Sequence record: KY555145.1
Strand: one strand, 5' to 3'
DNA length: 64,000 nt
Below are positions 43,706 through 50,026 of the stretch, piece after piece. Each line of letters begins with the position of its first letter. Positions within the stretch are counted from its first letter, which is position 1. The notes under the pieces are model-generated. The model saw only the letters and a program-made list of their open reading frames with translations, searched no databases and was not told the DNA's origin. The position numbers and the translations under genes are program-made.

Positions 43706-44368
43706 GGGGGCTACGGGCCGTCCTCCTGCGTTAGCCCCGCCGCCGCGCCTTCCAGGCGGCGAAGGTCGGGACGGAGCCGAAGGCGAGCCGGCCGAGGCAG
43801 CGGTTGGCGAGCAAAAGGAGAACCCGGCGAGCGGCGGAAGGCGAGTTCCTCGCCCTCGAACTCGGAAAGCACGTGGTGATGCCGGAACCACCGCGTTCGC
43901 GCGGACGTCTGGACGTTGCTAGGCGTAAGGCTGGCCTGCCGAGAAATGGAAACGGCCGGGGCGGGCGGGACTTGATCTCGTCCGCCTTTCCGCCTAAGCT
44001 TCCCTCATTGCAGGCGCAGCACCGCCCTTCGCTAACGGCCCCGAGGGGTACGCAAGGGCTAGAAGCCTTGCCTGGGACAGGACTGCCTCTGATCCAGGAA
44101 CGCCCTGGGCCGCGTAGCGCCCATGACGCGAACGCCGGCCGAGAATGGGCGACTAGGCGTGACGGCGGCCAGAGGCCGCAGCGACATTCCAAGCTCGATA
44201 GAGCGATCGGCGGGCCGGGGCGAAAGCCCTGTTTCGAGAGCCAGGGCAACCCGTCATAGGTCCTGGTCGGGCGACGAGGCAGCAAGTCCCGCGAACGGAG
44301 CCTCTGAGGTGGCGTCACCAAGATGCAGCAGACGCAAAAAGGCCCCGATCGCGAGATCGGGGCCTTTT
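43706..44368 (+). ncRNA. Unassigned ~630-nt large structured RNA candidate
   Basis: Own promoter and terminator, no credible ORF, many tetraloop hairpins, 10-bp long-range pairing 43874-43883 with 44311-44320. Confidence 0.7.
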
Positions 44369-44369
44369 C
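44336..44369. terminator. Bidirectional intrinsic terminator
   Basis: AAAAAGGCCCCGATC-GCGA-GATCGGGGCCTTTT. Confidence 0.9.
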
Positions 44370-44373
44370 ATGT

Positions 44374-44462
44374 TGGAGCTTCGGGAGGGACTCGAACCCT
44401 CATAGGTGTTCCCACCAGCAGAGATTTGCAATCCCGCGCCTAACCTCTCAGTCCACCGAAGC
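44374..44462 (-). tRNA. tRNA-Cys(GCA) with long variable arm
   Basis: Acceptor GCTTCGG/CCGAAGC, U73-CCA, anticodon loop TTGCAAA, T arm GAGGG-TTCGAGT-CCCTC, 18-nt variable region with GGTG-GGAA-CACC hairpin. Confidence 0.88.
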
Positions 44463-44645
44463 ACAAAAGGACCTCGACGCCCGAAGGCCCGAGGTCCGAT
44501 CCGTAACCAGGGGAGGGCCGTAGCTGTCCCCTGACCCTGAACGACAGGTGGCGGGCTTGGTCGTCATCCCGTCAGGCTCGCGGCGCCGCTCGCCTGAACC
44601 GCCGATATGCCACGAGGGCAGTGATCCGCAGGTCCCCACAAATAG

Positions 44646-44682
44646 CAAAAAGGCCACGATCCGCGAGGACCGTGGCCTTTTC
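44646..44682. terminator. Bidirectional intrinsic terminator (3' of GOLLD-like RNA)
   Basis: AAAAAGGCCACG...CGTGGCCTTTT. Confidence 0.85.
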
Positions 44683-44687
44683 GTTTT

Positions 44688-45560
44688 CCGACGGGCTGAG
44701 ACTACACCCATCAGCAATCCCGCTTCGAGGATTATTCCCCAGGTGCGACCCCAGGTATTCCCTCGACGTCCACCAGACCCCTTGCGGTAGTCCAGTCCGA
44801 GATCATCGCCGCCGTTCTTGCGCACCCCGAAGGGATTGCGGGTCTGGCGTTTGACCCATCATGGCGAACTACTCGACAGTTCCTTCCCCGCTGGGCTTGC
44901 GACCCACTCACCGGCGCTAACCGGCTGACGAAGCTCTTCCTATCGACACCTCGCGGGCTTGCGACCCTTGAGATGACTCCGTTACCCGAGGGCCGGAGCA
45001 TTTGGCGACTTACGTCCGCCACTGGACCAGTCTTTGCGTTTTTCATCGAAGCGGGGATTGAACCCGCGACCGACAGCTAGGACGGCTGTTGCACTACCAC
45101 TGTGCTATTCGCAAACCCACCAAGACGTGCTGGTCCAGTTGTTCCCAGAGCTTTTGACCCCAGAAATGCAACACGCCTCATATCTTTCGCCTTGCGGGCT
45201 ACTCGACTGCTCTTCAGGACCCCGTCTCCCCCGACCTTTCGGCCAGGATGCCCAGCACCCCTCGAACTGAAGCAAAGCTCTTCACCGCGAAGTGTCGAAC
45301 CCTGCAACCCAAACGGTTATCCGTACTCCCTAGACACGCTTGCACGGGATAGTCCGCTTGCGACGGACTGGCGGTTAAAGCCTCGGAGTTACCCCGGCCC
45401 CGCCTTGTCTCCCACGGTCTTCAGGTCTATCCCCTTTTGCAAGAGGCGGCCAGCTTCCCAGCCCGGACCCGTCGGCTTCCTCTGTCCTCTTGCGAGGTCG
45501 GGCGGCCTATGGGAGACCGTCCCTGTCACCCCGTCGCCGGGGCTTTCGTCAGAAGCGACG
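44688..45560 (-). ncRNA. GOLLD-like giant ornate RNA (~870 nt)
   Basis: On - strand: GAGTAGCCCGCAAGGCGAAAGATATGAGGCGTGTTGCATT...CAAAAG, a second GAGTAGTT, many GCAA/GAAA tetraloops and 3' GGGTGTAGTCTCAGCCC, all resembling recalled GOLLD consensus; flanked by promoter and terminator. Confidence 0.75.
45043..45114 (-). pseudogene. tRNA-like element embedded in GOLLD-like RNA
   Basis: Intact D arm (GCAC/GTGC), anticodon stem (ACAGC/GCTGT, loop CGTCCTA) and T arm (GCGGG-TTCAATC-CCCGC), but only a 4-bp acceptor stem and no CCA. Confidence 0.75.
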
Positions 45561-45565
45561 ATGAC

Positions 45566-45594
45566 GTTCTAGCGACAGCCCACGTCGTCGTCAA
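45566..45594 (-). promoter_or_regulatory. Sigma73-type promoter TTGACG-N15-GCTAGAAC for GOLLD-like RNA
   Basis: Near-perfect Caulobacter housekeeping consensus on - strand. Confidence 0.8.
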
Positions 45595-45650
45595 CGACTT
45601 TTTACATCCCGGCGCGGAATTTTTTCGACAGTCGTGGATGACGACAGTGC

Positions 45651-45679
45651 TTGACATTCTCGTAGACCCATGCTAGGTG
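45651..45679 (+). promoter_or_regulatory. Promoter TTGACA-N15-GCTAGGTG for tmRNA
   Basis: Divergent from the GOLLD promoter. Confidence 0.7.
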
Positions 45680-45681
45680 TC

Positions 45682-46058
45682 GAAAATCGTTGTAATTCGG
45701 ACAACGGAACTGGCGGCAAGACAGGGGTGCGAATCCCCTCGCCTCCACCATCGACGCCCGGCGCTGGGAGTACGCGACTCCTGGGCAGGGAGTGTTACCC
45801 TGGCGGGCTGCGGCCCGAGCCAAAGGTAGCCGGGCGTCGTTGATGGGGGCGACTAGCTTTCGATTGGCGCTCGGGACTGAAAGACGCAACGGTGGGTGAC
45901 CTCCACATCGGCTTGCCGGTGATCGGGTCAGGCAACAGTAAATGTCGCCGACAATGACAACGACGTCGTGGCTTTCGCCTCGGCTCGTGAAGCCATCGCC
46001 GCCTAATAAGCGGTAGAGGAGCCCGCCGGGAGCTTGGCAACAGAATCCCGGCAACCCC
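45682..46058 (+). ncRNA. ssrA: Circularly permuted two-piece tmRNA
   Basis: Acceptor piece ends AGGGG-TGCGAAT-CCCCT-CGCCTCC-A-CCA (45750); coding piece starts GGGGGCG (45845), giving a G3.U70 pair; resume context AACAGTAAATGTC-GCC; tag frame 45947-46006 encodes ADNDNDVVAFASAREAIAA-stop-stop; 3' GGCAACAGAA motif. Confidence 0.92.
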
Positions 46059-46187
46059 CTTTCGCAGGCGGGAACACCAACAGGCGATCTGTCGGGCGAC
46101 CGATTTCCGATCCGTGTTCCCGTCTTCGAAAGGTGGTCAGGCCTACCCTCTTGGTGTGCTATCCAAGGGTCTGGCCACTTTACAGAA

Positions 46188-46266
46188 CGCGGGGTAGAGG
46201 AGTCCGGTTGTCCTCGTCTGGCTCATAACCAGGAGATCGTGGGTTCAAATCCCACTCCCGCTCCCA
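46188..46266 (+). tRNA. tRNA-Met(CAT), initiator-like
   Basis: CGCGGGG acceptor with C1xU72 mismatch, loop CTCATAA, T arm GTGGG-TTCAAAT-CCCAC, CCA end. Confidence 0.88.
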
Positions 46267-46270
46267 ATGC

Positions 46271-46549
46271 GAACGCCGGCTGTTGAGAACGACGGCGTGA
46301 CAAGCTCGGAGAGAACGAGCACTCCAGTCCGGGGTATGAGGCCGGACTAGCGGACGCCGTAGCGATTGCAGGCGTGACACCCGGAGATAGCGGGACCGAT
46401 TTTCCAGGCTCCATGCCCGGCGCGTCGGGGGCGGACCGTTAATCCGCCCGGCGTCAGAGGATGAGGCTAGTTCTCGGCGATGAAGCTGCGCGCGCAGTGA
46501 GAAAGCCAGGGCATGGCGCTTGGAAAGTCGGTTCGCGGTTCGTCCGCTA
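46271..46549 (+). ncRNA. Structured spacer RNA: two tandem motif copies plus long rod-like stem
   Basis: GRACGCC...GGCGTGACA-hairpin twice; 23/24-bp stem 46395-46418 with 46509-46532; 9-bp stem 46348-46356 with 46541-46549. Confidence 0.55.
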
Positions 46550-46554
46550 CGAGA

Positions 46555-46628
46555 TGGAGATGTCGCCGGTTCGAGTCCGGCAGGTCCCCCAAAAGGAGGC
46601 CTTAGCTCAGTCGGTAGAGCGCTCCTAT
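46555..46628 (+). pseudogene. tRNA 3' half followed by tRNA 5' half (permuted order)
   Basis: 46555-46591 = anticodon-stem strand, variable loop, T arm GCCGG-TTCGAGT-CCGGC, acceptor AGGTCCC; 46596-46628 = GAGGCCT-TA-GCTC-AGTCGGTA-GAGC-G-CTCC. Confidence 0.6.
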
Positions 46629-46637
46629 CCCACCTTT

Positions 46638-46722
46638 GGTACGGTGGCTCGACAGGTAAGGCATCGGCCTCATAAGCCGAGGGTTCGTCCCAATCCTGGT
46701 TCAAATCCAGGTCGTACCTCCA
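46638..46722 (+). tRNA. tRNA(CAT), Met or Ile2, with long variable arm
   Basis: Acceptor GGTACGG/TCGTACC, U73-CCA, TCGGC-CTCATAA-GCCGA, 14-nt variable region GGG-TTCGT-CCC-AAT, T arm CCTGG-TTCAAAT-CCAGG. Confidence 0.88.
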
Positions 46723-46795
46723 ATCGACGCTTGACCCCAGGCCGCAGGCTGCTAAGCTTCCCCGGTCGGGATCGTCCCGCGTCCTTTCCAAGGTC

Positions 46796-46828
46796 AAGCC
46801 CCCGGAGCCTCGCTTCGGGGGCTTTTCA
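46796..46828. terminator. Intrinsic terminator closing the RNA island
   Basis: AAGCCCCCGGAG...CTTCGGGGGCTTTT. Confidence 0.85.
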
Positions 46829-49588: not shown

Positions 49589-49639
49589 GGGCGCCGCACG
49601 TGGTTAACGCGCGGACTGTCGCCCATCATGACACTAGAT

Positions 49640-49654
49640 GTCAAGATTCATGAC
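49640..49654 (-). promoter_or_regulatory. Phage promoter motif copy in divergent promoter region
   Basis: GTCAAGATTCATGAC on +. Confidence 0.65.
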
Positions 49655-49726
49655 TTGACCCAAGGCGTTAACCATGTCACGTTCGCCGCACGGCCGAGAG
49701 ATCGGCCGGTCACAAGGAGAACTATC

Positions 49727-50026
49727 ATGACCCTGATCGTCAAGATCATGTCGGGCGAGGACCTGCCCGACACCGCGCCCGAAAAGCGCTTCACCCTCCA
49801 CGCCGGCGTCAAATCCTTCCATCCGGTGGTCCAGTCCCCGGAGGCTCCCGGCGGCCACCCCTATTGCTATGTCCGGCTCTACATCGCCGACCCGGTCAAG
49901 ACCGCCGCCGTGCCCGGCTTCGTCGAGCATGAGGTCACGGTCGAGGCGCCGGGCAACGTCTACGTGATGAACGAGGCCGGCAAGACCATCGCCACCTGGA
50001 CCCCGCCCTGCGGCAAGCCGAACTAG
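49727..50026 (+). CDS. Hypothetical protein
   Basis: AAGGAGA RBS; 99 aa ending VYVMNEAGKTIATW. Confidence 0.75.
   Translation: MTLIVKIMSGEDLPDTAPEKRFTLHAGVKSFHPVVQSPEAPGGHPYCYVRLYIADPVKTAAVPGFVEHEVTVEAPGNVYVMNEAGKTIATWTPPCGKPN

Follow-up and report, generated by a model that had tools for sequence, protein, structure and literature searches.

The GOLLD RNA locus of phiCbK-like Caulobacter phages and its tRNA-like linker insert

A GOLLD locus in the phiCbK group

The sequence considered here is a stretch of 64,000 nucleotides (nt) from record KY555145.1, referred to below as the window. On its minus strand, between a transfer RNA (tRNA) gene for cysteine and a transfer-messenger RNA (tmRNA) gene, lies a discrete non-coding unit that matches the GOLLD family of RNAs (Rfam RF02032; Weinberg et al. 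2009). The first description of the family dates from 2009, and the structure of its cage from 2025. In the region 44300-46800, the window is 100% identical to the Caulobacter phages Ccr10, Ccr2 and Ccr29, 97-99% identical to phiCbK, Karma, Swift, Magneto and others, and 92% identical to BL57. The Ccr10/phiCbK group consists of giant siphophages of the genus Shapirovirus (Dolichocephalovirinae) that have Caulobacter crescentus as their host. The original prediction, which was made without database searches, had placed the element in an alphaproteobacterial phage, which the identity to Ccr10, Ccr2 and Ccr29 bears out. GOLLD RNAs usually lie beside tRNA genes, and by Rfam and ARAGORN, tRNA-Cys, tmRNA and two tRNA-Met genes flank the unit, the last two on the plus strand.

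The whole 64-kb window was scanned against Rfam 15, which gave six matches above the gathering thresholds. The strongest is that to GOLLD, with 165.3 bits against a gathering score of 150 and an E value of 1.4e-44, and the alignment spans the model from end to end (positions 1-416). The family had been named without a search, and the cmsearch result with the Rfam model supports that choice. The remaining five matches are to a permuted (two-piece) tmRNA (45688-46006, plus strand) and to four tRNAs, one of which lies within the GOLLD match. No further Rfam family matches the GOLLD unit, save for a partial match of the tRNA model to an insert in its linker, and ROOL, OLE, group I and group II introns, RNase P and others have no match at the gathering score in the window. 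The GOLLD score is modest, 165 bits compared with 166-226 bits in other phage contigs. That the unit is GOLLD is practically certain, and the best explanation for the region, to which we assign a probability of about 85%, is that it is the gene for the GOLLD RNA of a phiCbK-like Caulobacter phage.

The original prediction also implied that the find was new, which it is not. Kretsch et al. (Nature 2025, PMC12286853) searched the phage genomes of GenBank with the Rfam GOLLD model, and their Supplementary File S3 contains a row, KY555142.1:c102171-101685, that corresponds exactly to 45179-44693 of the window (a position in KY555142.1 minus 56992 gives the position in the window). The same file lists phiCbK, Ccr2, Ccr5, Ccr29, Ccr32, Ccr34 and Karma. 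Since the locus stands in a published alignment, the presence of GOLLD in the phiCbK group is not new knowledge, and the family call itself would not surprise a specialist. The locus is thus already detected, yet it was never discussed or annotated. A literature search found no paper that pairs GOLLD with phiCbK, and the papers that name both GOLLD and Caulobacter concern other things than these phages. Neither GOLLD nor the tmRNA comes up in the genome paper of phiCbK, and the GenBank records of these phages annotate only tRNAs at the locus. These records should carry annotations for the GOLLD non-coding RNA and for the tmRNA.

GOLLD is found above the Rfam threshold in Karma and BL57 and, beyond the Caulobacter phages, in Mesorhizobium phage Cp1R7A-A1 (193 bits), Sinorhizobium phage Phosso (187 bits) and Roseobacter phage DSS3P8 (150.7 bits). 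The copy in Brevundimonas phage Bajun falls below the threshold, yet it is included in the published list (PMC12286853). CcrRogue (Poindextervirus) keeps the order tRNA-Cys, tmRNA and two tRNA-Met and has no GOLLD at the syntenic site, and Rogue, CcrBL10 and Colossus are absent among the entries listed in the available part of the published file. In this phage lineage, GOLLD is thus accessory. The phiCbK group makes the question of GOLLD function directly approachable. Caulobacter crescentus and phiCbK are among the most tractable phage-host pairs, with mature host genetics; natural relatives with GOLLD (Shapirovirus) and without it (the CcrRogue type) are on hand; and sister phages differ essentially in the anticodon loop of the linker insert alone.

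Table 1. Features of the GOLLD locus and its surroundings, in window coordinates.
Feature	Position	Strand	Evidence or remark
tRNA-Cys	44374..44462	-	ARAGORN
Whole GOLLD transcription unit, ~916 nt (predicted)	44646..45561	-	Predicted start to end of terminator stem; conservation block coincides
Intrinsic terminator (17-pair hairpin, then U-run)	44646..44683	-	Kept in all six Shapirovirus phages
Conserved 3' region (Rfam RF02032), 487 nt	44693..45179	-	165.3 bits
3' core including pseudoknot	44693..45034	-
Linker (J13/15) with tRNA-like insert	45035..45118	-
tRNA-like module in linker J13/15	45042..45115	-	ARAGORN, Rfam tRNA model; GenBank tRNA-Gly(TCC)
Variable anticodon-loop positions 33-37	45079..45083	-	Five consecutive bases
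First hairpin of Rfam model	45119..45179	-
5' domain, 382 nt, with GCAA/GAAA-capped hairpins	45180..45561	-	Less conserved half; outside the Rfam model
Promoter of GOLLD unit (predicted)	45566..45594	-	-35 TTGACG 45594-45589, 15-nt spacer, -10-like GCTAGAAC 45573-45566
tmRNA promoter (predicted)	45651..45679	+	TTGACA 45651-45656, GCTAGGTG 45672-45679
tmRNA, two-piece (permuted), outside the GOLLD unit	45651..46097	+	RF04321, 71.9 bits; ARAGORN 45658-46097

Limits and domains of the RNA

The promoter elements of the GOLLD unit (Table 1), which we take to fit the Caulobacter housekeeping consensus TTGaCgS-N10-14-GCtANAWC, are both conserved in six Shapirovirus phages and in Bajun. The spacer between them and the DNA upstream diverge among the relatives, with 63% identity to BL57. 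Uninterrupted conservation among the six phages runs from about 45562 to just beyond the terminator hairpin. The syntenic unit of Bajun shares the promoter elements and the first bases, and its terminator hairpin stands at the corresponding place but has a different sequence. From the promoter, the terminator and the limits of conservation, the transcript is therefore predicted to extend from about 45561 to 44646, or about 916 nt. The original prediction of a promoter-to-terminator unit of about 870 nt at 44688-45560 was right in seeing a discrete non-coding unit and essentially right on its span; it left out the terminator hairpin (44683-44646) and gave no strand, which is the minus strand. 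A stranded, rRNA-depleted total-RNA sequencing time course of phiCbK infection is already public (PMC10688885); a search of its supplementary tables found no rows for the GOLLD region.

The unit has the two-domain layout and the length, above some 800 nt, of a GOLLD RNA: the 382-nt 5' domain, the 487-nt Rfam region and a tail make up the 916 nt, with a GC content of 60%. In the Rfam alignment, the conserved helices of the 3' domain are present, including the long-range pseudoknot, and few non-canonical pairs are flagged. The pseudoknot strands, AGUGGCGGAC and GUUCGCCAUG, form nine of ten pairs even though both partners depart from the consensus in four pairs. In place of one internal hairpin, the RNA has a hairpin specific to the lineage, with the loop UUAGCG, which is the common form in more than 30 related loci. 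Two hairpins of the 3' domain are enlarged by insertions of 27 nt and about 18 nt that are likewise specific to the lineage. The 3' core differs from that of BL57 by a single substitution in 342 nt (99.7% identity) and is therefore under strong purifying selection.

This conservation bears on whether the unit could be a decaying, non-functional GOLLD remnant that was acquired with the tRNA/tmRNA island. Such an origin would fit with the missing GOLLD in CcrRogue-type relatives, the degenerate anticodon loop of the insert and the modest Rfam score (165 compared with 166-226). However, the adjacent non-RNA DNA is only 63% identical to BL57 where the core has its one change, and both promoter and terminator are intact and conserved, which makes a remnant very improbable.

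The 5' domain is 91.4% identical to that of BL57, and six of its predicted pairs persist although both partners have changed. It has no similarity detectable by blastn to GOLLDs outside the Caulobacter phages except in its last 120 nt or so, and the 5' domains of other alphaproteobacterial-phage GOLLDs are largely unalignable with it. With nhmmer, these last ~120 nt match the sequence just upstream of the Rfam match in ten other GOLLD loci. The match in DSS3P8 has an E value of 2e-4, and the other nine are weak (E values of 0.2-1); they were used because all ten are collinear and end 1-4 nt from the Rfam match. A GAGUA...GCAA hairpin is shared in this part across the GOLLD loci.

The original prediction rested in part on repeated tetraloop stems of the GCAA and GAAA type. 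The enrichment is real: CGCAAG occurs seven times in a 923-nt unit, against a mean of 0.47 (standard deviation 0.81) in stretches of equal size from either strand of the window, and five or more copies are reached solely by stretches that overlap the GOLLD unit. GCAA is found in 12 copies where the mean is 2.8, and GNRA loops closed by at least four pairs number five, against 0.95 in dinucleotide shuffles, of which 2 out of 500 reach five. The description of the loops needs correction, since many of the supposed GCAA tetraloops have the form C-GCAA-G, and some of these resemble pentaloops. A pairing of UUGCG in J13/15 with the invariant CGCAAG loop was considered and dropped, as UUGCG is not conserved in the wider clade.

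The same stretch could be thought to encode small proteins. Open reading frames of 76-156 amino acids are found on both strands, among them one of 156 amino acids on the plus strand and one of 104 on the minus strand, and the annotation of one relative, BL57, places a coding sequence there. However, none of five reading frames tested within the unit has a Pfam match, an RNA covariance model fits at E = 1e-44, substitutions in relatives preserve base pairs, and other records have no coding sequence at this place. Long spurious reading frames abound on both strands because the genome is GC-rich, and a coding role can scarcely be right. The BL57 annotation, BL57_146c ("hypothetical protein", locus L003, 1714-1920), lies inside the GOLLD 5' domain, is very likely spurious and should go.

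A tRNA-like module in the linker

The linker insert lies between GOLLD model positions ~62 and 131, in the variable linker that may hold a tRNA in this family. Its D, anticodon and T arms are intact in the ARAGORN cloverleaf; the Rfam tRNA model also detects it but aligns it at positions 4-67 only, with 42.5 bits. The acceptor has four inner pairs followed by two central mismatches, and a CCA end is missing. In the window's other tRNAs, the acceptor has 6-7 pairs and CCA is encoded. In the main tRNA island of the phage, almost all acceptor stems are complete, and the tRNA-Gly and tRNA-Lys genes inspected encode CCA. This island already has Gly(UCC), Lys(CUU) and Lys(UUU). The anticodon loop of the insert, CGUCCUA, has G33 in place of U33 and a pyrimidine, U37. 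Judged by these features of its sequence, the insert is a tRNA mimic and not a functional tRNA, and it should cease to be counted as tRNA-Gly or tRNA-Lys.

Loop bases 33-37 are GUCCU in the window and in phiCbK, AUCCU in BL57 and UCUUA in Karma, Swift and RBC57. The Karma-type loop, CUCUUAA, is a canonical Lys CUU loop. These five bases are the only block of the 487-nt Rfam region that varies across the six Shapirovirus phages. They account for five of the 5-7 differences from the Karma group in that region, and the RNA is otherwise about 99.5% identical. The change looks like a single block replacement and not like independent point mutations. Gene conversion from the phage's own tRNA-Lys(CUU) or tRNA-Gly(UCC) was considered; the stems differ, so there is no obvious donor. 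A kissing interaction through a UUAA palindrome in the anticodon loop was also dropped, as this is simply the look of Lys and Asn loops and is absent here.

The module is not peculiar to the Caulobacter phages. IMG/VR was searched for the T-arm motif followed by the GOLLD linker motif, which gave 43 loci. All 18 loci tested carry GOLLD, with 166-226 bits and a tRNA match inside, and in every one the module occupies exactly the same insertion site; it is present in at least 28 related GOLLDs. The anticodon and T stems of the embedded elements are 96-100% paired, with three to five types of pair at most positions, and the two loop-proximal pairs of the T stem are invariantly G-C. Acceptor positions 1 and 2, by comparison, are paired in 39-50% of the elements, which is near chance. 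Among 29 distinct embedded elements, 20 have an acceptor of no more than 4-5 bp, which is the mode, and two have seven contiguous acceptor pairs, compared with 339 of 399 neighbouring tRNAs (Fisher p = 1.6e-18, a value that overstates independence because the embedded elements are homologous). The embedded anticodons are mainly Lys UUU (eight), Asn GUU (seven) and Lys CUU (three), while Lys and Asn together make up about 7% of the neighbouring tRNAs.

A homologous module occupies this site in the phages Cp1R7A-A1 and Phosso. Its anticodon and T stems have changed in a compensatory manner, and the anticodons, Leu CAG and Arg UCU, are different. The syntenic Bajun GOLLD, between tRNA-Cys on one side and tmRNA and two tRNA-Met on the other, has no insert. 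Mycobacterial GOLLDs (PMC6582537; Morgado et al. 2020), which are found in horizontally transferred tRNA arrays, also have a tRNA-shaped element in the linker, either a "pseudo tRNA" or a tRNA-Phe. They differ in being actinobacterial and in the anticodon, and a short acceptor or variable loop is not described for them in the literature searched. Neither the short-acceptor rule nor the variability of the anticodon loop was found described anywhere in that literature.

One proposal for such elements is "inhibited storage", made for the mycobacterial GOLLD with tRNA-Phe in a review (PMC12990946): a real tRNA would be held unprocessed in the cage until the latter opens and RNase P and RNase Z set the tRNA free. 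It would agree with the canonical CU-NNN-AA loops of most embedded elements, which reach 56-66 bits with the tRNA model. However, the acceptor of 4-5 bp in 20 of the 29 elements and the missing CCA are at odds with a tRNA precursor, as the other tRNAs inspected in the phage have both a full acceptor and CCA. The loop in the window lacks both U33 and a purine at 37, its anticodon duplicates tRNAs that the phage already has, and the pseudo tRNA embedded in the Mycobacterium aubagnense GOLLD gave no separate transcript, so that no free form was detected (PMC6582537). Storage is therefore improbable here.

Outside these statistics, the GOLLD linker motif follows a T-arm on seven contigs from metagenome-assembled genomes (loci L058-L064), assigned to Rhodoferax, Phyllobacteriaceae, Hyphomicrobiales, Dolichospermum, Treponema and Bacteroidales bins. 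These are probably phage contigs, and ARAGORN calls the insert in only two of the seven. Non-canonical anticodon loops are also seen in ordinary tRNAs of some GOLLD-bearing arrays (L013, L019, L022, L027, L035, L043, L047 and L053), such as a tRNA-Asp with pyrimidine 37 (CTGTCTA) and a tRNA-Lys without U33 (CCTTTGA).

Predicted cage assembly, possible function and surroundings

The GOLLDs of known structure form closed, dihedral cages without protein, in which the linker points inward (PMC12286853, PMC12990946). The env-38 GOLLD is a 14-mer (PDB 9MEE; PMC12286853), and that of Streptococcus agalactiae is a 12-mer at full length and a 10-mer when reduced to its 3' domain (PDB 9L0R, 9LMF; PMC12990946). 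The Caulobacter-phage RNA resembles env-38 in its two domains (5' ~380-420 nt, 3' ~410-490 nt), its pseudoknotted 3' core, its variable linker, its many GCAA and GAAA loops and its location in a phage beside tRNA genes. Unlike env-38, whose linker is a disordered stretch of 42 nt, it has the tRNA-like insert, and it is GC-rich (60%) and has the extra insertions in two hairpins of the 3' domain. The S. agalactiae GOLLD belongs to the same family; it differs in residing in a Firmicute chromosome or prophage and in being without helices P9, P11a-c and P21b. As helix content changes the number of copies in the S. agalactiae cage, a cage of a different size is plausible for the Caulobacter-phage RNA. 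ROOL RNA is comparable in that it, too, is a large and ornate RNA of phages, lies near tRNA islands and builds a cage of RNA alone (an 8-mer) with a disordered internal linker, but it is unrelated in sequence and fold and has no match in the window. An exact 29-mer of the published env-38 sequence has no match in viral or metagenome contig collections. A candidate loop in the window contains the "GC" dinucleotide reported for bridge B8; the assignment of the helix is tentative and was not used as evidence.

By analogy with these structures, the RNA would fold into its two domains, and roughly 10-14 copies would self-assemble into a closed dihedral cage that is held together by kissing loops and A-minor contacts. 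Assembly into a cage of some stoichiometry is likely. If the linker points into the lumen as in the known cages, 10-14 tRNA-like modules would be held inside. As a guess, the module might remain covalently part of the cage and there divert or trap, as a decoy, some host factor by which tRNA anticodon loops are read, for example, an anticodon nuclease of a defence system, and would protect translation together with the phage tRNAs, the tmRNA and an RtcB ligase. Anticodon nucleases specific for tRNA-Lys exist, as do phage countermeasures to them. The conserved arms, the dispensable acceptor, the rapidly changing loop and the company of phage tRNAs, tmRNA and RtcB fit with this guess. We regard such a retained decoy, trapping a factor that reads anticodon loops, as rather unlikely. 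The fuller version, in which an acceptor-truncated mimic is displayed 10-14 times in the cage and the loop sets its specificity against a host anticodon factor as an RNA-only counter-defence, is more doubtful. If the decoy reading were true, it would be the first function for GOLLD, a counter-defence that protects translation, and a mimic with a short acceptor and a variable anticodon is a concrete and testable lead to what GOLLD does.

The cage may instead have a cargo or role that is unrelated to the insert, with the module as a tolerated or structural passenger. Ribosomal subunits, proteins, metabolites and the nucleation of condensates would be candidates, and such cargos are listed in the published discussion (PMC12286853). 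Many GOLLDs, including env-38 and the syntenic copy in Bajun, are without a tRNA insert, and the cage-forming 3' core is far more conserved than everything else. However, the module is found at one fixed site in at least 28 distinct sequences, and extensive compensatory changes have preserved its arms, which argues for selection on the module itself. A passenger is possible, if somewhat on the unlikely side.

Several points weigh against the reading of the region as the gene for a cage-forming GOLLD RNA with a meaningful module. The expression of the RNA, its ends and the absence of processing are all inferred from sequence. The predicted folding energy of the 5' domain is not better than that of shuffled sequences (minimum free energy, z = -1.1), a non-significant result that is frequent with GC-rich sequence, and comparative evidence was relied on instead. 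CcrRogue-type relatives lack GOLLD, which is therefore dispensable for such phages on laboratory hosts. The copy number of the cage is not predictable from the sequence, as known GOLLDs have 10, 12 or 14 copies and this one has hairpin insertions. Decoy modules would sit within a closed cage, and we know of no target nuclease in Caulobacter. The loop in the window is the least tRNA-like of the 29 embedded elements, with no U33 and a pyrimidine at 37, and given this degenerate loop, the module could equally be decaying here. Finally, the bias for Lys and Asn and the short acceptor may have been inherited from one ancestor, as the embedded elements are homologous, and need not have been selected repeatedly.

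The tmRNA gene and GOLLD are divergently transcribed, and 57 nt separate their -35 boxes. The tmRNA encodes the tag peptide VADNDNDVVAFASAREAIAA. It is unannotated in the records of Ccr10, phiCbK, Karma, Swift, RBC57, BL57 and CcrRogue; among the records examined, only that of Bajun annotates a tmRNA. The gene is retained in CcrRogue, which is without GOLLD, and in Bajun. A tmRNA also adjoins GOLLD in Roseobacter phage DSS3P8, about 160 nt downstream, and a beta-type tmRNA lies 6 kb from GOLLD in an IMG/VR locus (L032).

Between the GOLLD terminator and tRNA-Cys is a conserved, unannotated spacer of about 180 nt (44463-44645, minus strand) with a second terminator-like hairpin (44490-44469). 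The spacer has no Rfam match, and no promoter for tRNA-Cys was identified.

The phage also encodes an RtcB RNA ligase, annotated at 136012-137244 of KY555142.1, outside the window. The RtcB family reseals tRNAs that have been cut in the anticodon loop, and its presence gives some background to the idea that this phage is affected by damage to tRNAs. Genes for NAD salvage, encoding a nicotinamide phosphoribosyltransferase and a NadM-family nicotinamide-nucleotide adenylyltransferase, are found about 6-9 kb from it.

Bacterial tRNAs with a long variable arm are normally those for Leu, Ser and Tyr only. In this phage, unusually long tRNAs with an extra stem in the variable region include the tRNA-Cys beside GOLLD (89 nt) and one of the tRNA-Met genes (46638-46722, plus strand, 85 nt). 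A long tRNA-Lys(CUU) of 87 nt and a tRNA-Lys(UUU) of 91 nt are likewise found outside the window, at 49593-49775 of KY555142.1.

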